From assembly GCF_000006765.1 (NCBI RefSeq), contig NC_002516.2: a DNA stretch of 64,000 nucleotides. One strand, 5' to 3'. Origin of the DNA: Pseudomonas aeruginosa PAO1 (GTDB lineage Bacteria; Pseudomonadota; Gammaproteobacteria; Pseudomonadales; Pseudomonadaceae). The position numbers were made by a program, and so were the translations under genes. Positions 3,781-47,298 of the stretch are shown here, piece by piece (the stretch's first letter is position 1; each line of letters opens with the position of its first letter). The notes beneath the pieces were generated by a model, which had not been told where the DNA came from, made no database searches, and was given only the letters and a program-made list of their open reading frames with translations.

Positions 3781-4851
3781 TTACAGGCGGGAGCGCTCGA
3801 TGGCCTGCAGGCTCATCTGCTCCAGCAGCTTGTTCATCTGCACGAACTGGGCGAAACGCTTGTCCTGGGTCTGCCCGTGGTAGTAGCGGTAGTAGATCTG
3901 CTGGACGATGCCGGCAAGACGGAACAGGCCATAGGTGTAGTAGAAGTCCAGGTTGTCGATCGGTGGGATCCCGGCCCGCTCGGCGTAGTAGTCGGCGAAC
4001 TCCCGGCGGGTCAGCATGCCCGGCAGGTGGCTGGGCTGGCGGCGGGTCAGCTGCACCGGAGCCGGGTCGCCGGCTTCCACCCAGTAGGCGAGGGTATTGC
4101 CGAGGTCCATCAGCGGATCGCCGAGGGTGGCCAGTTCCCAGTCCAGCACGCCGATGATCTGCATCGGGTTTTCCGGGTCGAGGATCACGTTGTCGAAGCG
4201 GTAGTCGTTGTGCACGATGCCCGGCTTGTGGTGATCGGCCGGCTGCTTGTCCTTGAGCCAGGCCTTGACCGGTTCCCAGAGCGGCGCGTCGGGGGTCAGG
4301 GCCTTCTCGTAGCGGTCGGTCCAGCCGGCGATCTGGCGCTGCACGTAGCCGTCCGGGCGGCCCAGGTCGGCCAGTCCGCAGGCGGCGTAGTCGACGTTGT
4401 GCAGTTCGACGAACTTGTCGATGAAGCTCTTGCACAGGCTGCGGGTCTGTTGTTCGTCGAGATTCAGCTCAGGCGGCAGTTCGGCGCGCAGGATGATGCC
4501 CTTGACCCGTTCCATGACGTAGAACTCGGCGCCGATCACCGACTCGTCGGTGCAGTAGAGGTAGGCTTTCGGGCAGTAGGGGAAGCCTGCGTTCAACTGG
4601 TTCAGGATGCGGTATTCGCGGCCCATGTCGTGGGCCGACTTGGCCTTGTGGCCGAATGGCGGGCGACGCAGGACGAACTCCTGGCGCGGATACTCGATCA
4701 GGTAGGTCAGGTTGGACGCGCCACCGGGGAACTGGCTGATCTTCGGGGTGCCTTCGAGGCCGGGGATATGGGCTTTCAGGTACGGGTCGATGACGGCGGC
4801 GTCGAGTTCTTCGCCGGCGCGGATGCGAGTGGATTGGTCGGTCAGCGACAT
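3781..4851 (-). CDS. APH/choline-kinase-fold phosphotransferase, ACAD10/11-kinase/LvaA-like
   Basis: GGASNLTYL, VLRRPP, SAHDMGREYRIL, HNDYRFDNV, VLDWELATLGDPLMDLG; start trimmed to MSLTDQ with GAGAAGGG RBS. Confidence 0.9.
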   Translation of the reverse strand: MSLTDQSTRIRAGEELDAAVIDPYLKAHIPGLEGTPKISQFPGGASNLTYLIEYPRQEFVLRRPPFGHKAKSAHDMGREYRILNQLNAGFPYCPKAYLYCTDESVIGAEFYVMERVKGIILRAELPPELNLDEQQTRSLCKSFIDKFVELHNVDYAACGLADLGRPDGYVQRQIAGWTDRYEKALTPDAPLWEPVKAWLKDKQPADHHKPGIVHNDYRFDNVILDPENPMQIIGVLDWELATLGDPLMDLGNTLAYWVEAGDPAPVQLTRRQPSHLPGMLTRREFADYYAERAGIPPIDNLDFYYTYGLFRLAGIVQQIYYRYYHGQTQDKRFAQFVQMNKLLEQMSLQAIERSRL

Positions 4852-4941
4852 GGGGTTCCCTTCTCGTGGTGCCACGGCGGAGCCGCGGGAGCCGGTGCGC
4901 GCATCAGGCTGCGCAATGATGGTGATCGGCGATAATTGGCT

Positions 4942-4970
4942 AATCTAATGTCCTGTCCCGGCCCTCACAA
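4942..4970 (-). promoter_or_regulatory. Sigma70-type promoter for the kinase-SDR pair
   Basis: Minus strand TTGTGA-N17-TAGATT about 90 nt upstream of the kinase start. Confidence 0.5.
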
Positions 4971-5049
4971 GCCGCCGCCAGGCGTTATGGGCAAGCGTGT
5001 TGCCGCTCCATCACGGTCCCTGATCGTCGGCCTGGAGGAATGCCGGACG

Positions 5050-5083
5050 AAAAAAAACCGGAGCCGCGAGGGACTCCGGTTTT
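5050..5083 (-). terminator. Intrinsic terminator after the SCP2 gene
   Basis: AAAACCGGAG/CTCCGGTTTT stem followed by an 8-U run on the minus strand. Confidence 0.8.
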
Positions 5084-5108
5084 CCTTCTGGCATGGCGCC
5101 GGAAACGG

Positions 5109-5423
5109 TCAGACCGGGAACAGTTCGCCCAGCTTCATCGCCAGCATCATGTCGCCTTCGGCGCGCAGCTTGCCGGCCATGAAGGCCTGCATGCCGTCGG
5201 TCTCGCCGCTGGTGATGCCCTTCAGGGTTTCGCTGTCCATGATCAGGGTGACGTTGGGGTTCTCGGCGTCGCCCTGTACCACTTCGCAGGTACCGTCCTT
5301 GACGACCAGGTAGTGGTTGTCGCCGTCTTCGATGTTGAACTGGAACACCAGATCCAGGCCGGCGGCCGCGCTGGCGTTGAACTTGCTTTTCATGGTGGAG
5401 ACGATGTCAGCAACGGTGGTCAT
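5109..5423 (-). CDS. SCP2 sterol/lipid carrier domain protein
   Basis: 104 aa; FQFNIEDG, ENPNVTLIMD, DGMQAFMAGKLRAEGDMMLAMKL is the SCP2 C-terminal signature. Confidence 0.92.
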   Translation of the reverse strand: MTTVADIVSTMKSKFNASAAAGLDLVFQFNIEDGDNHYLVVKDGTCEVVQGDAENPNVTLIMDSETLKGITSGETDGMQAFMAGKLRAEGDMMLAMKLGELFPV

Positions 5424-36624: not shown

Positions 36625-37710
36625 TCAGGCGAGCACCGCCACCGACTTGATCTGCGCCCACAACAGCTGGCCGGGTCGTAGTTGCAACTGGTCCCGCGAG
36701 TAACGGGTGATCCGCGCCAGCAGCGGATTGCCGCCGGCATCCAGGCGCACCAGGACGTGGGCCGCGGTGTCGGTATCGACCAATTCCAGGACCCGTACCG
36801 GCAGGCGGTTGAGGATGCTGCTCTGGGCGTCGTCGCGCAGGTTCAGGCTGACGTCGCGCGCCTGTACCTTGAAGCGCAGGCGCTTGCCGGGGGCCAGCGG
36901 GGCGTGGGCGACGCGCATTTGCAGCGCACTGCCGGGCAGGACCAGGGTCAGCAGGCCGTAGGCCGGGTCGTGGTCGCTGACCGTGCCCTCGATCACCACC
37001 CCGGCGTCGTCGTCCAGCGCCAGCGGCAGGTCGACTCGCGCCAGGGTTTCGCCGATCGGCCCGCTGGCGCGGACCTTGCCGTTCTCCAGCAGCACCAGGT
37101 GATCGGCCAGGCGCGCCACTTCGTCTGGCGAGTGGCTGACATAGAGCACCGGGATGTCCAGTTCCTCGTGCAGGCGCTCGAGATAGGGCAGGATCTCGCC
37201 CTTGCGCTTCAGGTCGAGGGATGCCAGAGGCTCGTCCATCAGCAGCAGGCGCGGGCTGGTGAGGAGGGCCCGGGCGATGCCGACGCGTTGCTGCTCGCCG
37301 CCGGAGAGGCGTTCCGGCATGCGTTCCAGCAGATGCTCGATGCCCAGCAGGGCGCAGGCCTGTTCCAGCTCGACGCGGCGTTCGGCGGCGGCGATGCGCT
37401 TGAGACCGAAGGCCAGGTTGCGCCGCACCGTCAGGTGGCGGAACAGGTTGGCATCCTGGAACACGTAGCCGAGGGCACGCCGGTGGGGCGCGACGAAGAG
37501 GTTGCGGCGGCTGTCCTGCCAGGTCTCGCCGTTGATCGTCACCTCGCCCTCGGCGGCCTTTTCCAGGCCGGCGATACAGCGCAGGCAAGTGCTCTTGCCG
37601 GAGCCTGAATGGCCGAACAGAGCGGTCACGCCACGACCGGGAAGAGCCAGGTCGATGTCCAGTTCGAAGCCGGGGTAGGCGCGGCGGAAGCGCAGGCGCA
37701 GGCCGTCCAT
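36625..37710 (-). CDS. modC: Molybdate ABC transporter ATPase
   Basis: GHSGSGKST Walker [17 protein letters not shown]-terminal TOBE/Mop domain. Confidence 0.96.
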
Positions 37711-37711
37711 C

Positions 37712-38398
37712 TCAGGCCCAGCCCGGCCGGCGGCGCCGGCCCGAATAGAGGGCGAGGAGGACGACGAAGGAGAACGCCACCATGCCGCCGGCCAGCCAGT
37801 GGGCCTGGGCGTATTCCATGGCTTCGACGTGATCGAATATCTGCACCGAGACCACGCGGGTTTTCTCCGGGATGTTGCCGCCGATCATCAGCACCACGCC
37901 GAACTCGCCGACGGTATGGGCGAAGCCGAGGATCGCGGCGGTGACGAAACCCGGCCGGGCCAGCGGCAGGACCACGCTGAAGAAACGGTCGACGGGGCTC
38001 GCGCGCAGGGTCGCGGCAGCCTCCAGCGGTTTCTCGCCGATCGCCTCGAAGGCGTTCTGCAACGGTTGCACGACGAAGGGCAGCGAGTAGAACACCGAAC
38101 CGACCACCAGACCGGCGAAGGTGAAGGGCAGGGTGCCGAGACCGAGGCTCTGGGTGAGCTGGCCGATGAAACCGTTGGGACCCATGCTGACCAGCAGGTA
38201 GAAGCCGATCACCGTCGGCGGCAGCACCAGCGGCAGGGCCACCACCGCGCCGATCGGCCCCTTCAGCCAGGAGCGGGTGCGCGCCAGCCACCAGGCGATG
38301 GGCGTGCCGATCAGCAGCAGGAGGAGGGTGGTGAGCGAAGCCAGCTCGATGGTCAGCCAGATGGCCGCCAGGTCCGTACTGTCGAGTGGCAACGCCAT
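37712..38398 (-). CDS. modB: Molybdate ABC permease
   Basis: [43 protein letters not shown]. Confidence 0.96.
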
Positions 38399-38410
38399 GC
38401 AGGTCCCGCC

Positions 38411-39217
<807 letters not shown>

Positions 39218-39224
39218 TTAGGGG

Positions 39225-39252
39225 TTCGCTATGGCTTTTGGAATATAGCGCT
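39225..39252. promoter_or_regulatory. ModE box upstream of modA
   Basis: CGCTAT-N12-ATAGCG, same spacing as the ModE consensus CGCTATATA-N6-TATATAACG. Confidence 0.7.
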
Positions 39253-39280
39253 ACGCGGAAATTGATCCGGCGCAAGTCGC

Positions 39281-39931
39281 TCAGCCGGCCAGCGCGCGGA
39301 AACGCCGACGCGGCGCGGCCTCGCCGGGGAGTGCCAGGCAGCCGGCGCAGACCAGGCGGACGATGTTTTCCGCCGCCTGCCGGTAGTCGCTTGCGTCCAG
39401 CCCGGCCTGGCCGGTGAGGCGCGCCAGTTGCCAGCCGCCAAGGGCATAGGACTCGGTCATCGCCCACAGGTTGAGCAGCAGGTGGTACGGATCCAGCGGC
39501 GCCAGCAGGCCTTCGTCGATCCACTGGCGGATGCGCTCGGCGTTGCGTTCCGCCTGGGCGTCGAGGCGTTCCAGCAGCGGCGCCGGCATGCGCGGCGCGC
39601 CGCGCATGATCTCGCAGGAGAAGACCCTGGCCGCGTACGGCCGCTCGGCGCCGATGCGCATCTTGTTGTCGACGTAGGCGCGTAGCGCCTCGGCGGGCGG
39701 CTGGTCGCCGGCGAATGGCCGGGAGGCTTCCAGCAGGGGCTCGACGATGCTGTCCAGCACCGCCTCGTAGAGTTGCGCCTTGGAGCGGTAGTAATAGAGC
39801 ACGTTGGCCTTCGCCACGCCGGCGCGCTCGGCGACGTCGCTGAGCCGGGCGGCGCTGAAGCCGCAGTCGGCGAAGACTTCGCAGGCGGCGTCGAGGATCA
39901 GTTGCAGGTTGCGTTGGCGGATCTTCTTCAT
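39281..39931 (-). CDS. TetR-family regulator, RutR-like
   Basis: IRQRNLQLILDAACEVFA..GFSAARLSDVAERAGVAKANVLYYYRSK; SCEIMRGAP; DPYHLLLNLWAMT. Confidence 0.92.
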   Translation of the reverse strand: MKKIRQRNLQLILDAACEVFADCGFSAARLSDVAERAGVAKANVLYYYRSKAQLYEAVLDSIVEPLLEASRPFAGDQPPAEALRAYVDNKMRIGAERPYAARVFSCEIMRGAPRMPAPLLERLDAQAERNAERIRQWIDEGLLAPLDPYHLLLNLWAMTESYALGGWQLARLTGQAGLDASDYRQAAENIVRLVCAGCLALPGEAAPRRRFRALAG

Positions 39932-39952
39932 CGGGACCGATACGGGGCAGGT

Positions 39953-39980
39953 TTCGTTGTTAATATTTTTATATAACGAA
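39953..39980. promoter_or_regulatory. Second ModE-like box upstream of the RutR-like TetR gene
   Basis: TTCGTTGT-taatattttt-ATATAACGAA = CGTTGT-N12-ATAACG; right half TATATAACGA is near-consensus. Confidence 0.65.
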
Positions 39981-40060
39981 CGCCTTGTGCCTGGATAGTC
40001 GTCGTCAGGCCGGCGACGCTTGATCGGATGCGCATTGCCAAGCCGTGGGGGCGCTGGTAT

Positions 40061-40076
40061 CTGTATGCATGAACAG
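40061..40076. promoter_or_regulatory. LexA (SOS) box
   Basis: CTGT-atgcatga-ACAG, an exact fit to the gammaproteobacterial CTGT-N8-ACAG; overlaps the ATG at 40065. Confidence 0.8.
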
Positions 40077-41744
40077 TACCAGGCTCCGCTTCCCGTGAAT
40101 TCCCCAGCGCTTCCCGAACCCTTCTACTACCTGCACAACTTCCGCGCGGTGCTCGCCTGGATCGGCGAACGCTATGCCGATCTGCTCGACGATCAGGAAC
40201 GTGCCTTCATCGCCGCGTTCGCCGAGCTGCCCGAGGCCAGCCAGGCCCTGCTGGTGCGCATGGTGATGCGCAAGGGCACGCTGTTCCGCGAAGGCAAGCT
40301 GGCCTATGCCGAGATCGGCGACACGCGCGCCGCCGTGCAACCGCTGTTGGCATTGGGCTGGGTGGACGCGCAGCCGACCCTGGAACTGGCGCAACTGTTC
40401 GGCTTGCTGAAGAAGGACGAATTGTCGCAGCTGTTCAGGGACCATCTCGGGCGCGCGAACCTGCGCAAGGATGCGCTGCTGGAACGGCTCCAGCCGTTGT
40501 TCCCCGAGGCGCGGCGGCTCGCCGAGTGGCAGGCCGACTTCGCCGAACCGGTCTACGAGTTGCGCTGCATGGCGCTCTGCGACCGCTTGCGGTTGATGTA
40601 TTTCGGCAACCTGTGGCAGGACTGGTCGGAGTTCGTCCTTGCCGACCTGGGTATCTATCGTTACGAAAGCGTCGAGTTTTCCGCCGACTCTCGCGGCTTT
40701 CGCCTGCGCGCCGACGTCGACGCCTATCTCCACCTGTTCGACTGCCGCCAGCGCTTCGACCTCGGCGAGCCGCTGGAGGAACTGCTCGCCGGCCTGCCGG
40801 GCGAACCCTACGCCAATCCCTGGCTGGAAGGGCGGCGGGTCAAGCTGCTGTTCCAGTTCGCCCAGCACTGCGAAAAGCAGCGGGATTTCGACCTGGCCCA
40901 GCGGCTCTATCGCCAATCCAGCCACCCCGGCGCGCGCCTGCGGGCGATTCGCAGCCTGGAACGCGGCGAGCGCTTCGCCGAAGCCCATGCATTGGCGCGG
41001 GAGGCCAGCTGTGCGCCGGAAAGCGACGCCGAACGCCAGGGCCTGGCCCGATTGCTGCCGCGCCTGCAAGGCAAGCTCGGCCTGCCGCGACAGGCGCGGG
41101 CGGCGGCTCCGGAAATCGACCGCCTGGACCTGTGCCTGGCGTTCCCGAGCGAACCCTGTAGCGTCGAGTGGGCGGTCCGCGAGCACCTGGAAGAGCCCGG
41201 TTGCGCGGTGCACTACGTCGAGAACGGCCTGATCAATTCGCTGTTCGGGCTGCTCTGCTGGGAGGCGATCTTCGCCGCCATTCCCGGGGCGTTCTTCCAT
41301 CCCTTCCACAGCGCGCCGGCGGACCTGCACAGCGCCGACTTCCGCCAGCGCCGCGCCGCCCTGTTCGAGGCCTGCCTGGGACGGCTGGAGGACGGCAGCT
41401 ACCGCGACGCGATCCGCTGTCGCTACCGCGACAAGTTCGGCCTGCAGTCGCCCTTCGTCTACTGGGAACTGCTTGGCGAGGAACTGCTCGAACAGGCGCT
41501 CGATTGCCTGCCGGCGGCCCACCTGCGCGCCTGGTTCGAACGCCTGCTGGAGGATATCCCGGGCAACCGCGCCGGCCTGCCGGACCTGATCCAGTTCTGG
41601 CCGGCGCAGCGGCGCTACCGGATGGTCGAGGTCAAGGGACCGGGCGACCGCCTGCAGGACAACCAGTTGCGCTGGCTGCAATTCTGCCGCGAGCGGGAGA
41701 TGCCGGTGGCGGTCTGCTACGTGCGCTGGCATGTCGATGACTGA
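40065..41744 (+). CDS. fan1: FAN1-like VRR-NUC structure-specific nuclease
   Basis: PFYYLHNF start, TPR-like middle, C-terminal GLPDLIQF...VEVKGPGDRLQDNQLRW PD-(D/E)xK motif; 559 aa matches the structurally studied PaFAN1; true start may be the GTG at 40095. Confidence 0.92.
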   Translation: MHEQYQAPLPVNSPALPEPFYYLHNFRAVLAWIGERYADLLDDQERAFIAAFAELPEASQALLVRMVMRKGTLFREGKLAYAEIGDTRAAVQPLLALGWVDAQPTLELAQLFGLLKKDELSQLFRDHLGRANLRKDALLERLQPLFPEARRLAEWQADFAEPVYELRCMALCDRLRLMYFGNLWQDWSEFVLADLGIYRYESVEFSADSRGFRLRADVDAYLHLFDCRQRFDLGEPLEELLAGLPGEPYANPWLEGRRVKLLFQFAQHCEKQRDFDLAQRLYRQSSHPGARLRAIRSLERGERFAEAHALAREASCAPESDAERQGLARLLPRLQGKLGLPRQARAAAPEIDRLDLCLAFPSEPCSVEWAVREHLEEPGCAVHYVENGLINSLFGLLCWEAIFAAIPGAFFHPFHSAPADLHSADFRQRRAALFEACLGRLEDGSYRDAIRCRYRDKFGLQSPFVYWELLGEELLEQALDCLPAAHLRAWFERLLEDIPGNRAGLPDLIQFWPAQRRYRMVEVKGPGDRLQDNQLRWLQFCREREMPVAVCYVRWHVDD

Positions 41745-44013
41745 GCAGGGCGGCGAGGCGCTGTACCAGGTGGCGGTGCGCGCGCTTTGCGAGTTCAGCG
41801 CCAAGCGCGGCGACCTCGACCTGCGCTTCACCCCGTCGCCCAGCGCCCTGGAAGGCATCGCCGGACATACCCTGGTGACCTCCCGGCGCCCCGCTCACTA
41901 CCAGCGCGAAGTGGCGCTGGACGGACGCTATCGTCACTTGCAGGTGCGCGGCCGGGCGGATGGCTACGATCCGCAGGCGAACTGCCTGGAGGAAATCAAG
42001 ACCCACCGCGGCGACCTCGCCCTGCAACCGGCCAACCACCGGCACCTGCACTGGGCCCAGGCCAGGGTCTACGGCTGGCTGCTCTGCGCCGAACGGAAGC
42101 TGGAGGAAGTCGAACTGGCGCTGGTCTACCTGGAGGTCGGCAGCCAGAAGGAGACCCGCTTCGTCGAGCGGGTGCGGGCCGACGAGCTTCGGCTGTTCTT
42201 CGAGAGCCAGTGCCAGGCGTTTCTCGCCTGGGCCGAGCAGGAACTGGCGCACCGCCAGCGGCGCGACCGCGAACTGGCCGCGTTACGCTTTCCCCACGCC
42301 GAATTCCGCCACGGCCAGCGGCAACTGGCGGAGGCGGTGTACAAGGCCGCCTCCGCCGGTTGTTGCCTGATGGCCCAGGCGCCGACCGGGATCGGCAAGA
42401 CCATCGGCACGCTGTTCCCGCAACTCAAGGCGATGCCCGGGCAGCGCCTGGACCGGCTGTTCTTCCTGGCCGCCAAGACCCCGGGCCGGGCCCTCGCGCT
42501 GCATGCCCTGCGTAGCCTGGAAGGGGAGACCGGCGGACTGCCGGTGCGGGTGCTGGAACTGGTGGCGCGGGACAAGGCCTGCGAGCACCCGGACAAGGCC
42601 TGCCACGGCGAGTCCTGTCCCCTGGCCCAGGGCTTCTACGAACGCCTGCCGGCGGCCCGCGCCGCCGCCGTGGAGGCGCGCTGGCTGGACCAGGCGCGGT
42701 TGCGCGAGGTGGCGCTGGCGCACCGGGTCTGTCCCTACTACCTGGGCCAGGAACTGGCGCGCTGGTGCGACCTGGCGGTGGGCGACTACAACTACTACTT
42801 CGATCTCGGCGCCATGCTCCATGGCCTGGCCCAGGTCAACCAGTGGCGGGTGGCGGTACTGGTGGACGAGGCGCACAACCTGGTGGAGCGCGGCCGGCGG
42901 ATGTATTCCGCCGAACTCGACCAGGGCGATTTCCTCGGTGTGCGCAAAACCGCCCCGGAGGCCCTGAGGAAACCGCTGGAGCGCATCCAGCGTGCCTGGA
43001 ACGAACTGGGCAAGACCCAGGCGGACGACTACCAGGCCTACGACGAGCCTCCGCAGAAGCTGCTCCTGGCCTTGCAGAACGCGGTGGCGGCGATCAACGA
43101 CCTGCTCGCCGAGCAACCGCAGGCGCTGGAGCCGGCGTTGCAGGAGTTCTACTTCGCGATCCTGCAGTTCGGCCGTCTCGCCGAGCTGTTCGGCGAGCAT
43201 TCGCTGTTCGACATCGAGAAGCGCCCAGGCCGCAACGGCCGCAGCCTGGCCCGGCTGTGCCTGCGCAACGTGGTGCCGGCGGCGTTTCTCGCCGAGCGCT
43301 TCGCCGCCAGCCGCTCCACCGTGCTGTTCTCCGCTACCCTCGGGCCGCGCGACTATTACGCCGACCTGCTCGGCCTGCCGGCGGGCACGCCCTGGCTGGA
43401 AGTGGACTCGCCATTCAGCGCCGAGCAACTGGAGGTGCACATACAGCGTCGGGTTTCCACGCGCTATGCGCAGCGCCAGGCATCCCTGGCGCCCATCGCA
43501 GCGATTCTCGGCGAGCAGTTTCGCCAGCGGCCGGGCAACTACCTGGCCTTCTTCAGCAGCTTCGATTACTTGCAGCAGGCGCTGGACGTCTTCCGCCAAG
43601 CATACCCGTGGGTGCCGTGCTGGAGCCAGACGCCACGGATGGACGAGGCGGAGCGCCGGGTCTTCCTCGAGCGCTTCGTCGCGGGCGGCGAGGGCATCGG
43701 CTTCGCCGTGCTCGGCGGTGCCTTCGGCGAAGGCATCGACCTGCCTGGCGAGCGCCTGATCGGCGCCTTCATCGCCACCCTCGGGTTGCCCCAGGTGAAT
43801 CCGGTGAACGAGCAGATCCGCCTGCGCATGCAGCGCCTGTTCGGTGACGGCTACGACTACACCTACCTGTATCCGGGACTGCAGAAGGTGGTCCAGGCCG
43901 CCGGGAGGGTGATCCGCAGCCGCAGCGATCGCGGCGTGGTGCACCTGATCGACGACCGTTTCGCCCAGGCCAAGGTGCGCCGGTTGCTACCGGGCTGGTG
44001 GCAACTGCGTTGA
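41737..44013 (+). CDS. XPD/DinG-family Fe-S helicase with an N-terminal PD-(D/E)xK nuclease-like domain
   Basis: FRHGQ Q-motif, APTGIGKT, four Cys (DKACEHPDKACHGESC...VCPYY), VDEAHN, FSATL, GEGIDL, QAAGRVIR; N-terminal GRADG/EEIKT/AQARVY; overlaps the nuclease stop. Confidence 0.9.
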   Translation: MTEQGGEALYQVAVRALCEFSAKRGDLDLRFTPSPSALEGIAGHTLVTSRRPAHYQREVALDGRYRHLQVRGRADGYDPQANCLEEIKTHRGDLALQPANHRHLHWAQARVYGWLLCAERKLEEVELALVYLEVGSQKETRFVERVRADELRLFFESQCQAFLAWAEQELAHRQRRDRELAALRFPHAEFRHGQRQLAEAVYKAASAGCCLMAQAPTGIGKTIGTLFPQLKAMPGQRLDRLFFLAAKTPGRALALHALRSLEGETGGLPVRVLELVARDKACEHPDKACHGESCPLAQGFYERLPAARAAAVEARWLDQARLREVALAHRVCPYYLGQELARWCDLAVGDYNYYFDLGAMLHGLAQVNQWRVAVLVDEAHNLVERGRRMYSAELDQGDFLGVRKTAPEALRKPLERIQRAWNELGKTQADDYQAYDEPPQKLLLALQNAVAAINDLLAEQPQALEPALQEFYFAILQFGRLAELFGEHSLFDIEKRPGRNGRSLARLCLRNVVPAAFLAERFAASRSTVLFSATLGPRDYYADLLGLPAGTPWLEVDSPFSAEQLEVHIQRRVSTRYAQRQASLAPIAAILGEQFRQRPGNYLAFFSSFDYLQQALDVFRQAYPWVPCWSQTPRMDEAERRVFLERFVAGGEGIGFAVLGGAFGEGIDLPGERLIGAFIATLGLPQVNPVNEQIRLRMQRLFGDGYDYTYLYPGLQKVVQAAGRVIRSRSDRGVVHLIDDRFAQAKVRRLLPGWWQLR

Positions 44014-44102
44014 CCGGTGGCGATACGCCGGCAGGTGCTGCCGGACAGCCGGGCAGCCATGTATAATCGCGTCCCCACGATTTCCCCCGATCCGGATACG
44101 CC

Positions 44103-44312
44103 ATGGCTTCCGCTCCCGACGCTCTTCCCCAGGCCCTTTCCTCCGACGACGCTCCGGCCCAGGCCGCGCCGAGCGACGCCAGCGCGTTGCTGAAGGCCGC
44201 CCTGGCGAAGAAGAACCAGGCCCAGCTCTATCCGCAGCGGAAGATCCACGACAAGGGCCAGCGTCCCGGCATGGCGCCGCGCGGTACCCGTCGTTCGATG
44301 GGCAAGCGCTGA
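44103..44312 (+). CDS. 69-aa small protein with basic C-terminal half
   Basis: Perfect TATAAT at 44062-44067 upstream, GC3-rich codons, fills an otherwise empty gap. Confidence 0.6.
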   Translation: MASAPDALPQALSSDDAPAQAAPSDASALLKAALAKKNQAQLYPQRKIHDKGQRPGMAPRGTRRSMGKR

Positions 44313-44453
44313 GGCCTTTCCCGCGCCTGGCGTTTTGTGGGCCAGTTCCCGCCACGAAGGATCAAAGCGGGCAGCCTTAACAGTTTTGCCCTTTCGCGGC
44401 CGTAGGCCGCAGCCCCATCCCTTATGCTCGCCGCCCCTGGGCGAGCCGCGTCG

Positions 44454-44981
44454 ATGCAGCGCGCCCGTTTGCCGGAATCCGCCTGCTGCATGTCGCGTCA
44501 CCTTCCATCGTCTTTCGTTTCCCTGCGCAGCCTGGCCGGGCATGCGCCCGCTGTGCTTTGCGTGCTGCTGCTGGCGTTGCTCAGCGCCAGCCTGGCCAGC
44601 CAGACGCGCTCGCTGCGCCGCGAGCTGGCGGAATTGCCCGCCGCAGCGGCCCCGGCGCCGCCAGCCAACCCTTCAGCGGCCCCGCGCGCGGCGTTAGCCG
44701 GCTTGTTCGGTGGCGCTCCGTCGCCGCGCGGCGCGACGGCGGGCGAGCGTCTGCAATTGCGCCTGCTGGCCTGCTTCCTGGCGCGTCGCGAGGACCGCTC
44801 GGCGGCGCTGATCGCGGTGGCCGGGCGCTCGCAGCGCTTCCTGCCGGGCGCCGAAGTGCGCCCCGGCACCGTGCTGCTGGCGGTTCATCGCGACCATGTG
44901 GTGCTGCGCGACCAGGGTTATGAAGAACGTCTGTATTTCCCCAAAGCCGAAGGGGCAGAAACCACCCATGCCACGTTGTAG
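44454..44981 (+). CDS. xphA: Orphan GspC-like T2SS protein XphA
   Basis: TM anchor, then LxLLACF...SAALIAVAGRSQRFLPGAEVRPGTVLLAVHRDHVVLRDQGYEERLYFP HR domain; start uncertain (44424/44454/44490). Confidence 0.85.
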   Translation: MQRARLPESACCMSRHLPSSFVSLRSLAGHAPAVLCVLLLALLSASLASQTRSLRRELAELPAAAAPAPPANPSAAPRAALAGLFGGAPSPRGATAGERLQLRLLACFLARREDRSAALIAVAGRSQRFLPGAEVRPGTVLLAVHRDHVVLRDQGYEERLYFPKAEGAETTHATL

Positions 44982-47298
44982 TACCCGTTCCGCCCAGCGC
45001 CTGTCTCCGCTGTTCCTGGTCCTGTCGCTGGCCGTCCTCGGCCTGGCGCCGCCGGTCCATCCGGCACCTGCCGAGACTGCCGCCGCGCAAGAGGAAGAGC
45101 AGTGGACGATCAACATGAAGGATGCCGAGATCGGCGACTTCATCGAGCAGGTATCGAGCATCAGCGGCCAGACCTTCGTCGTCGATCCGCGGGTGAAGGG
45201 GCGGGTCACGGTGGTATCCCAGGCGCGGCTCAGCCTGGCGGAGGTCTACCAACTATTTCTTTCGGTGCTCGCCACCCACGGCTACGCGGTGCTGCCGCAG
45301 GGCGACCAGGCGCGTATCGTGCCGAACATGGAGGCACGCCAGGACGCCGCGCAGAAGACCGTCCGCGATGGGCCGGGCAGCCTGGAGACGCGGGTGGTCC
45401 AGGCGCAGCAGACCTCGGTGGCGGAACTGATCCCGATGATCCGGCCGCTGGTCCCGGCCCATGGCCATCTGGCCGCCGTACCGTCGGCCAACGCGCTGAT
45501 CGTCAGCGACCGCCGCTCCAACATCGAGCGCATCGAGGCGATCGTGCGCAGCCTCGACCGGGCCGGCGAACATGACTACAGCATCTACGACATGCGCCAT
45601 GCCTGGGTCGCGGAAATCGCCGAGGTGCTCGATCGCAGCGTCACCCCGGCCGCCGGGAAGAGCGCCGCCACCGTCCAGGTCCTTGCCGACAGCCGCAGCA
45701 ACCGCCTGGTCCTGCTCGGTCCGCCGCAGGCGCGAGCGCGCTTGCTGCGGCTGGCGCAGTCGCTCGACGTCCCCTCGTCGCGGTCGGCGAACAGCCGGGT
45801 GATCCGCCTGCGCCATGGCGACGCCAAGACCCTTGCCGCCACCCTCGGGGAGATCGGCGAATCGCTGCACGGCGAGCGGGGCCAGGATGGCCGGGGAAGC
45901 GGCAAGCGCGGCCTGCTGGTGCGCGCCGACGAATCGCTGAATGCCCTGGTGATCCTCGCCGACCCGGAGGATGTCGGCCTGCTCGAGGACATCGTCCGCC
46001 AGCTCGACGTGCCGCGCGCGCAACTGCTGGTGGAGGCGGCGATCGTCGAGCTGTCCGGCGAGATCGGCGACGCCCTCGGGGTGCAATGGGCGCTGCGTAG
46101 CGGGCATGTCGCCGGCGGCGCTGGCTTCGCCGACAGCGGGTTGTCCATCGGCACCCTGCTGGGCGCGCTGCAGGCCGGCAAGCCGCCGGCAGAGCTGCCC
46201 GACGGTGCGATAGTCGGCCTCGGCAGTCGCGATTTCGGCGCGCTGGTCACCGCGCTGAGCCGCAATAGCCGCAGCAACCTGCTGTCGACGCCGAGCCTGC
46301 TGACCCTGGACAACCAGAAGGCGGAAATCCTGGTCGGCCAGAACGTGCCGTTCCAGACCGGCAGCTACACCACCAGCGCCAGCGGTTCGAGCAATCCGTT
46401 CACCACTGTCGAGCGCAAGGATATCGGGGTGACCCTCAAGGTCACGCCGCACATCGGCGAGGACCGCATGCTGCGCCTGGAGATCGAGCAGGAAATATCC
46501 TCCATCGCGCCAACCGCCACCCTGGCGGCGAAGGCGGTGGACCTGGTGACCAACAAGCGCTCGATCAAGAGCACCGTACTGGCTGACGACGGCCAGGTCA
46601 TCGTCCTCGGTGGATTGATCCAGGACGACCTGCAGCGCAGCGATTCGCGGGTACCGCTGCTGGGCGACATCCCCGGCGTCGGCCGGCTGTTCCGCTCGTC
46701 CCGCGAGACCCGGGTGAAGCGCAACCTGATGGTCTTCCTGCGACCGAGCATCGTCCGCGATGCCGCCGGCCTGGAGCGCATCAGCCATGGCCGTTACCGT
46801 TCCATCCAGTTGCTGCGCGGTGCCGCCGGCGAACCGGCGCGCCCGCTGTTCGAGGATGCCGGCGCCATCGACCTGCGTCCCGCCGCCCAGGTCGCACCGG
46901 CACCTATTGGCTCGCCGCGCAGCTATCCGGCTCCAGCCCCGGTGCTGATGGAGAAGCCGCGCCTGGCGGACCCGGCGTCCCTGGGCGACGGTCGCGGCGG
47001 CGAGGTGCTGGAGGTTCGCCAGGGCACGCACGCGCCGCAGCCGCCGTCACCCCAGCGCTACGCCGTGCGATTGGTCGAGGGCAGCAGCGAAGCCTTCATG
47101 CGCGCGCTGATCGAGCGGCATCCGGGCCTGTCGTTGCGTTTGCGCCGCGAACTGCGCGATGGCCAGGAGCTGTTCGCGGTGGAGCGGGGCGACTACCTCG
47201 ACCCGGAGCAGGCACGCCGGGCCCTGGCGGAACTGCCCGAAAGCCTGCCGCGAGGGAAGGCGCGGGTGATTGCGCATACGCCGGGAAGCGCCCTGTGA
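44968..47298 (+). CDS. xqhA: Orphan T2SS secretin XqhA (GspD family) with C-terminal extension
   Basis: [11 protein letters not shown]0, [70 protein letters not shown]; 776 aa. Confidence 0.95.

Follow-up and report, generated by a model that had tools for sequence, protein, structure and literature searches.

For ten years, structural work on how FAN1 unhooks crosslinks has used the Pseudomonas aeruginosa nuclease PaFAN1 as its model. FAN1 is a 5'-flap endo- and exonuclease whose incisions at 5' flaps fall a few nucleotides inside the duplex, and in PaFAN1 the residues E386, D507, E522 and K524 are the metal and phosphate ligands of the active site (PMC4201288). EndoDinG is a class of helicase-nucleases named in a recent review (Cheng, 2025; PMC11981726). 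Its first structure (9KQH) is that of FmaDinG, the DinG protein of Finegoldia magna, published in July 2026 (Li et al., 2026; PMC13650095). FmaDinG is a Mn2+-preferring endonuclease on single-stranded DNA and a 5'-3' helicase that digests into duplexes in an ATP-dependent manner; the substitutions H40A, E54A, R73A, D75A, E88A and K90A nearly abolish its nuclease activity, while D378A yields an ATPase-dead protein (PMC13650095). The 9KQH crystal form bears D75A as a nuclease-dead mutation. In this study, we analyzed a stretch of 64,000 nucleotides of the P. aeruginosa PAO1 chromosome (NC_002516.2; hereafter the window, with a G+C content of about 67%), in which a FAN1 gene is directly followed by a helicase gene of the PA1866 type. 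The analysis confirmed that the second gene encodes a proteobacterial EndoDinG, an XPD/DinG-family Fe-S helicase with an N-terminal nuclease domain. This kind of helicase-nuclease is already known; the newer part is its conserved operon with FAN1, which is probably SOS-controlled.

The FAN1 structure paper (Gwon et al., 2014) makes no mention of a helicase or an operon, PaFAN1 is described in a 2026 review on crosslink repair in bacteria that leaves the adjacent helicase gene unnamed, and both EndoDinG papers (PMC13650095, PMC11981726) mention neither FAN1, VRR-NUC nor Pseudomonas EndoDinGs. The only earlier trace that we found is a note in a table (PMC3424549), by which VRR-NUC and a DEAD_2 helicase occur together in gamma-proteobacteria.

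The EndoDinG-type gene is located at 41731..44013 (all features are on the plus strand unless indicated otherwise, and residues are counted from the ATG at 41731) and encodes 760 aa from this ATG, or 758 aa from the second in-frame ATG at 41737, where the NCBI form begins. In public databases, the 758-aa form goes by the name ‘ATP-dependent DNA helicase [Pseudomonas aeruginosa]’; it is 99% identical across the searched region and corresponds to a 90%-identity cluster, named P. aeruginosa, of 3205 sequences. The FAN1 homolog (PaFAN1, PA1865 type; 40065..41744), which opens the operon, encodes 559 aa with HTH, SAP, TPR-like and VRR-NUC domains. Its stop codon (TGA, 41742-41744) overlaps the helicase start by 14 nt or 8 nt, depending on whether the ATG at 41731 or at 41737 is used, and the junction reads ...GATGACTGA... 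This overlap of 8-14 nt suggests translational coupling of the two genes, which form an operon.

The PD-(D/E)xK endonuclease domain comprises residues 1-185 (41731..42285) and was delineated by its predicted fold, Foldseek and conservation. The AlphaFold2 model of the N-terminal 190 residues has an alpha/beta core with a mean predicted local distance difference test (pLDDT) of 94.5 and a predicted template modeling score (pTM) of 0.89. In a Foldseek search against the PDB, its top match is 9kqh_A (E=1.6e-13, query-normalized TM 0.74), followed by the Cas4 protein SSO0001 (4ic1; E=5e-6), with further matches to human EXO5, RecE, AdnAB, ACE1, Cas4-Cas1-Cas2 (7mi4) and 8d3l, and with AddAB, lambda exonuclease, MGME1 and RecBCD also on the list. 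The full-length model (pLDDT 93.5, pTM 0.91) likewise matches 9kqh_A best (E=1.8e-65, TM 0.81/0.83), with archaeal and human XPD, E. coli DinG, CasDinG and S. aureus ExoDinG as the next matches. With phmmer, the PDB sequences contained a single full-length match, 9KQH chain A (E=3.5e-109), aligned over residues 13-758, with the N-terminal domain included.

The alignment with 9KQH relates the catalytic positions to residues of FmaDinG. H46 (41866..41868), the metal-site histidine of the motif E-G-x-x-x-H, corresponds to FmaDinG H40, and the metal ligand E60 (41908..41910) corresponds to E54. In the GRADG motif, R75-A76-D77 (41953..41961) supplies the substrate-binding arginine and the catalytic aspartate (FmaDinG R73 and D75), while the ExK motif E88-I89-K90 (41992..42000) corresponds to FmaDinG E88 and K90; R17 pairs with FmaDinG R10. 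These are followed by the QxxxY motif typical of RecB-family nucleases, Q110-A-R-V-Y114 (42058..42072). Conservation was assessed in 33 full-length homologs with 35-64% identity, and a second alignment of 36 sequences agrees. E60 (33/33 and 36/36), R75, D77, E88, K90, Q110 and Y114 are invariant, position 46 is a histidine in 31 of the 33 homologs and G42 is kept in 32. Every FmaDinG residue needed according to mutagenesis is therefore retained among these 33-36 sequences, either without exception or, for H46, in 31/33. These findings support the assignment of the domain to the restriction-endonuclease-like PD-(D/E)xK fold of the RecB/Cas4/EXO5/AddAB clan and show that its catalytic set is complete, and by analogy with FmaDinG the window protein is predicted to be a metal-dependent endonuclease.

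A first-pass annotation made from the sequence had proposed such a domain on the basis of four short strings, all of which are present in the translation (LEGIAGH at residues 40-46, GRADG at 74-78, LEEIKT at 86-91 and HWAQARVY at 107-114) and lie, as it had them, before the Q-motif (Q196), the Walker A motif (K223) and the DEAH box (379-382). Its distance of 170 residues to the Q-motif was slightly off, as LEGIAGH and Q196 are about 150 residues apart, a trivial discrepancy. The span that it had given, 41737-42270, lies in the domain (residues 3-180), the end of which is nearer to residue 185. Because the AlphaFold2 model and Foldseek show a PD-(D/E)xK fold, and because the acidic residues and the lysine (D77, E88 and K90) are invariant in the 33 homologs, the domain call itself stands.

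Profile libraries do not recognize this domain. Pfam gave no match on residues 1-200 even at E≤1, NCBIfam covers only the helicase part of the protein (Rad3/YoaA/DinG models, all partial and far below their cut-offs), and PADLOC matches neither the nuclease domain nor FAN1. Searches with the predicted fold and with PDB sequences were therefore needed. Chance is far from explaining the resemblance: used alone as a query against 1.84 billion representatives, the 190-aa N-terminus retrieved 1314 clusters (50% identity level) with E≤1e-3 and, at the stricter limit of E≤1e-10, 598. The annotation's remark that a generic helicase label would hide the nuclease is borne out by the blindness of Pfam and NCBIfam and by the public name of the protein; helicase-nucleases stand behind thousands of proteobacterial entries that read ‘ATP-dependent DNA helicase’, and recognizing the domain corrects this blind spot.

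The remainder of the protein is the helicase, and all Pfam matches (DEAD, DEAD_2, HBB and Helicase_C_2) begin at or after residue 201. The Q-motif (FRHGQRQ, Q196) and the Walker A motif (AQAPTGIGKT; A217-T224 with K223) lie at 42316..42402, partly within the Pfam DEAD match to residues 201-267, and the 36-sequence alignment has Q196, G220, G222 and K223 without exception. The Fe-S domain (42580..42732; Pfam DEAD_2, residues 279-398) contributes C284, C291, C296 and C334, which are invariant in both alignments (33/33 and 36/36) and correspond to the site at which the 9KQH density shows an Fe-S cluster. The DEAH box, D379-E380-A381-H382 (Walker B; 42865..42876), has invariant D, E and H, and motor domain 2 (residues 597-758; 43519..44004) matches Helicase_C_2 (PF13307) at 3.5e-37. 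The motor is an XPD/DinG-family superfamily 2 (SF2) helicase, with a 4Fe-4S core, an arch and a pair of RecA-like motor domains, and is predicted to be a 5'-3' single-stranded DNA translocase.

FmaDinG and the window protein share the same order of domains (N-terminal PD-(D/E)xK, motor domain 1, Fe-S domain, arch and motor domain 2) as well as the catalytic, Fe-S and ATPase residues. They differ in that they are only 27-30% identical, and the window protein comes from aerobic or facultative beta/gamma-proteobacteria, outside the lineages listed for EndoDinG. The gene also lies in an operon overlapping FAN1 and is accompanied by an SOS-type box, two features that are unmentioned in the two EndoDinG papers. 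A further relative, ExoDinG (Staphylococcus aureus DinG, 8ZEF/9II8), also combines a DinG core with an N-terminal nuclease, but this nuclease is a DnaQ/DEDD 3'-5' exonuclease of unrelated fold and the Fe-S domain is degenerate; its Foldseek match to the window model runs through the helicase part. ExoDinG has been implicated in crosslink tolerance (PMC13705206).

The label ‘Cas4/RecB-like’ given in the first-pass annotation holds for the fold and the motifs but not for the 4-Cys cluster of the Cas4/AddB/EXO5 type, which is absent from the domain. Cas4 (SSO0001, 4IC1; Cas4-Cas1-Cas2, 7MI4) has the same fold and RecB-type motifs, but the window domain is fused to a helicase and lacks a CRISPR context, and it has E60, for which Cas4 has no equivalent (PMC13650095). 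Within residues 1-185, no cysteine is invariant or nearly so in the 36-sequence alignment, and the helicase site is the sole Fe-S site of the protein. Membership in Cas4 was rejected because of the missing Cys cluster, along with the absence of a cas context and of a family hidden Markov model (HMM) match. RecB/AddB-type family HMMs (Pfam PDDEXK_1 and relatives) also gave no match on residues 1-200 at E≤1, and a RecB/AddB-type assignment with a superfamily 1 (SF1) UvrD-like motor does not fit a protein whose motor is SF2 XPD/DinG.

In the product of the upstream gene, Pfam finds FAN1_HTH, FANC_SAP and VRR_NUC, the protein aligns with crystallized PaFAN1 (4R89/4R8A, 5Y7G) over residues 1-559 at 1285 bits, and an alignment of eight orthologs shows no variation at the four active-site residues E386, D507, E522 and K524. 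By sequence, the gene product is PaFAN1 itself, with its active site intact. With D507, E522 and K524 of PaFAN1 intact and the EndoDinG site complete, the operon thus has two PD-(D/E)xK-superfamily sites and one translocase, as had been proposed from the sequence.

We then asked how widely the two genes are associated, searching in both directions. EndoDinG loci were collected with a 10-sequence alignment at one genome per species, giving at least 596 relatives, of which the best 80 loci were used; they belong to beta- and gamma-proteobacteria, plus two metagenome-assembled genomes labelled otherwise. In 53 of these 80 genomic loci, a full-length FAN1 gene abuts the helicase gene upstream on the same strand and ends at the helicase start. 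In the reverse search, a FAN1 alignment was run against metagenome contigs, yielding 80 loci, 73 of which had at least 400 bp downstream and were counted. The EndoDinG N-terminal domain begins within 200 nt of the FAN1 end in 63 of the 73. A maximum-likelihood tree of 81 helicases requires three changes of the FAN1 label versus 22 for shuffled labels, and places the window protein in a well-supported clade of 33 sequences, all of which have FAN1. FAN1 is also directly upstream in two of six very divergent relatives that were sampled, whose N-terminal domains show 35-41% identity. Although strong, old and directional, the linkage is not obligatory.

Some individual loci of these searches deserve a remark. 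The two metagenome-assembled genomes carry the labels Synechococcus (L036) and Verrucomicrobiaceae (L061), and their EndoDinGs nest in Polaromonas and Pseudomonas clades, respectively, which suggests contamination of the bins and not a wide taxonomic spread. The FAN1 loci lacking EndoDinG are L092, L083, L086, L090, L091, L093-L095, L105 and L107; in L092 (4995-6674 and neighbours), FAN1 stands alone and is followed by convergent SNF2-family and Mfd genes.

A LexA/SOS-box-like palindrome, CTGTATGCATGAACAG, is located at 40061..40076 and overlaps the FAN1 start codon (ATG at 40065). It is the only match to CTGT-N8-ACAG in the window, where 0.57 matches are expected (about 0.002 per 240-bp interval). 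In related loci, a strict box lies between -200 and +40 nt of the operon's first gene in 27 of 53 loci with FAN1 and in 5 of 26 without (32/79 in total), against a background of 0.0026 per 240 bp (only 11 boxes in the remaining approximately 1.02 Mb). Many of the boxes at the operon start come close to a perfect CTGTATAAATATACAG, and in the loci without FAN1 the SOS-type box precedes the helicase gene. Such enrichment at the operon start of relatives argues that the FAN1-EndoDinG operon was ancestrally under putative SOS control. Both PA1865 and PA1866 have been reported as UV-C-induced and described as lying outside the known LexA-like regulons (PMC12796719). In the window itself, LexA may still bind the degenerate box.

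Taken together, we consider it likely that EndoDinG and FAN1 form a damage-induced module that acts at stalled or crosslinked replication forks, the identity of the helicase as an EndoDinG being part of this reading. We infer that both enzymes cooperate in crosslink repair on the same substrate, each with its own choice of strand. By analogy with FmaDinG, the motor would load on a 5' single-stranded tail and unwind in the 5'-3' direction, while the 3'-ended strand would pass into the N-terminal nuclease for endonucleolytic cleavage, with ATP needed for deep digestion. After SOS induction, a gap or the 5' single-stranded arm of a fork that is stalled or crosslinked might serve EndoDinG as a loading site, from which it would unwind until blocked; such a stall at a crosslinked Y-fork has been imaged for XPD (8REV). 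Its nuclease would then cut the 3'-ended arm, providing a second incision or degradation, while FAN1 would incise the 5'-flap strand. At converged forks or bubbles, both cuts could flank the lesion on a single strand and so unhook it. An equally simple, sequential alternative is that FAN1 would make a nick or gap through which EndoDinG would enter, displacing and degrading the damaged strand. The suggestion of the first-pass annotation that the two sites cut on either side of a lesion is plausible.

Several observations weigh against the proposed fork-repair module. PaFAN1 alone is said, by the title of a 2018 study by Jin and co-workers, to unhook crosslinks in vitro, so that a second nuclease would not be strictly required. 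The characterized homolog FmaDinG is distant (27-30% identity), comes from a Gram-positive anaerobe and has no reported FAN1 partner. The linkage has exceptions on both sides, as 27 of the 80 EndoDinG loci have no FAN1 within 6 kb, 10 of the 73 FAN1 loci have FAN1 alone with no EndoDinG downstream, and three of the six very divergent relatives stand alone. Finally, the box in the window has correct ends but four inner mismatches relative to the P. aeruginosa consensus, and it sits on the FAN1 ATG and not in a recognizable promoter.

The alternative that fares best is that EndoDinG is a stand-alone enzyme for end resection or flap degradation, similar to Dna2, AddAB or AdnAB, which acts at gaps or double-strand ends, independently of FAN1, and shares an operon with it for co-regulation only. 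FmaDinG alone digests into duplexes with ATP, many EndoDinGs have no FAN1 neighbour, and AdnAB, AddAB and RecBCD are among the Foldseek relatives of the nuclease domain. These three complexes indeed resemble EndoDinG in coupling a RecB-family nuclease to an ATP-driven translocase, with unwound DNA being fed to the nuclease, but they have SF1 UvrD-like motors and a C-terminal nuclease, whereas the window protein has an SF2 XPD-type 5'-3' motor and an N-terminal nuclease. Moreover, the window system has one nuclease per polypeptide, with the second in a separate VRR-NUC protein. The likeness to AddAB/AdnAB, which had also been raised in the first-pass annotation, therefore fits the nuclease fold and the idea of a motor feeding a nuclease, but not the motor class, polarity or domain order; the analogy is loose because the motor is of the SF2 5'-3' XPD type and not of the SF1 3'-5' UvrD type. 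Dna2 is the closer architectural analogue, but it has an SF1B helicase, an Fe-S cluster inside the nuclease domain and no equivalent of R17. P. aeruginosa already possesses the usual resection machinery, and in the window as in most relatives FAN1 and EndoDinG overlap and abut on the same strand, in both search directions and stably on the tree. We regard an independent resection enzyme as rather unlikely.

Considerably less probable is an anti-phage or anti-plasmid defence module, in which a CasDinG- or DdmD-like helicase-nuclease would be combined with a VRR-NUC effector. The PADLOC model PDLC01439 (‘typeIV_DinG, CAS-IV-A associated’) matches residues 179-757 (41731-44010) at 4.8e-153, DdmD and Hna rank low among the Foldseek matches, and VRR-NUC domains also occur in toxins of type VI secretion systems (PMC9635880). 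The PADLOC match, however, covers the generic helicase core only and extends neither to the nuclease domain nor to FAN1, and the NCBIfam Csf4 model (TIGR03117) scores 14.6 bits on the helicase versus a cutoff of 400. There are no csf or cas genes near the operon, the neighbours being FAN1, TetR, modABC and type II secretion system (T2SS) genes. CasDinG (Csf4) was rejected for these reasons and because its Fe-S site is vestigial while the Fe-S cysteines are intact here. In addition, the gene is conserved (the cluster of 3205 members) and vertically inherited, and SOS boxes mark the operon in relatives. We should note that PDLC01439, by matching a chromosomal repair-type helicase, probably gives rise to spurious ‘defence system’ calls and would mislabel such entries as CRISPR-associated DinG.

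A non-catalytic role of the N-terminal domain as a module for DNA binding or gating, like the pseudo-nuclease N-terminal domain of pExoDinG, is scarcely credible: pseudo-nuclease DinG variants do exist (PMC11981726), but all metal-ligand and phosphate-binding residues are invariant family-wide, a pattern expected only under selection for catalysis, and the homologous FmaDinG domain is an active endonuclease.

Within the proposed damage-induced module, other nucleases may take the place of FAN1. In seven Burkholderiales loci lacking FAN1 (Acidovorax, Roseateles, Rhizobacter and Hydrogenophaga), a conserved protein of about 290 aa is encoded directly upstream of EndoDinG on the same strand (L033:3360-4370, L035:5162-5992, L046:5108-5995, L050:5123-5992, L060:5198-5995, L064:5196-5939 and L067, ending at about 5998). 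Pfam, NCBIfam and the PDB gave no match to it, and its family has more than 2100 homologs, with all 120 listed source names being ‘hypothetical protein’. A divergent VRR-NUC/FAN1 protein was rejected, as hhalign against the FAN1 alignment gave a probability of 0.1%. The family has an invariant block, W..A.PD.FS.R.T.V..Y..P.VHE.K..RADLL.DL..AKR..Y, and from the motif PD...HE[IV]K...RADLL, read by eye, the protein may be a candidate PD-(D/E)xK nuclease that replaces FAN1 non-homologously. One of the six divergent relatives, the distant EndoDinG P0269 (35% identity in the N-terminal domain; L161:2446-4215, 4206-5255), is followed by an overlapping gene for a 589-aa protein with a weak GIY-YIG match and then by a metallophosphoesterase gene. 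The 290-aa protein and the weak GIY-YIG neighbour together suggest that EndoDinG pairs with interchangeable nucleases, which we regard as a lead and not as a finding.

A more far-reaching reading, possible but in our view doubtful, is that FAN1-EndoDinG is a self-contained, SOS-controlled machine for crosslinks and forks, in which a FANCJ/XPD-like helicase brings its own second incision. Equally tentative is the modular partner slot included in this reading, which would be occupied by FAN1 in most beta/gamma-proteobacteria, by the 290-aa protein in some Burkholderiales and by the weak GIY-YIG protein elsewhere. The comparison is with eukaryotes, in which FAN1 and XPD-family helicases (FANCJ, XPD) represent the same two protein families and take part in the repair of interstrand crosslinks and bulky lesions; FANCJ and XPD are relatives of the window helicase core in both sequence and fold. 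The eukaryotic proteins differ in being separate and unlinked, in being recruited via FANCD2-FANCI or TFIIH and in having helicases devoid of a nuclease domain. If this reading is true, the operon would be the counterpart, in minimal prokaryotic form, of the dual incision with which eukaryotes achieve unhooking, and the UV-induced ‘orphans’ PA1865 and PA1866 would join the LexA regulon. The operon also raises the question of whether SOS studies in P. aeruginosa have missed a LexA-controlled pathway. With its two genes in a laboratory strain, it offers a simple and genetically tractable system for studying the division of labour at a blocked fork between a 5'-flap nuclease and a 5'-3' Fe-S helicase-nuclease. 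The value added here is the conserved and probably SOS-controlled FAN1-EndoDinG operon, which makes a hypothesis on bacterial crosslink repair testable.

The genes flanking the operon appear to be unrelated to it. In a scan of 39800-44500, no sigma-70 promoter was predicted, and the sole terminator-like site lies within FAN1. Upstream, on the opposite strand (36625-39931, minus), we found a molybdate-type ABC transporter (modABC, with a TOBE-domain ATPase, a permease and a periplasmic binding protein) and, within the same region, a divergent TetR/YcdC-like regulator. Downstream, 44424-47298 (plus) encodes a T2SS protein C-like gene product and an 800-aa secretin, which fits the xphA/xqhA region of P. 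aeruginosa.

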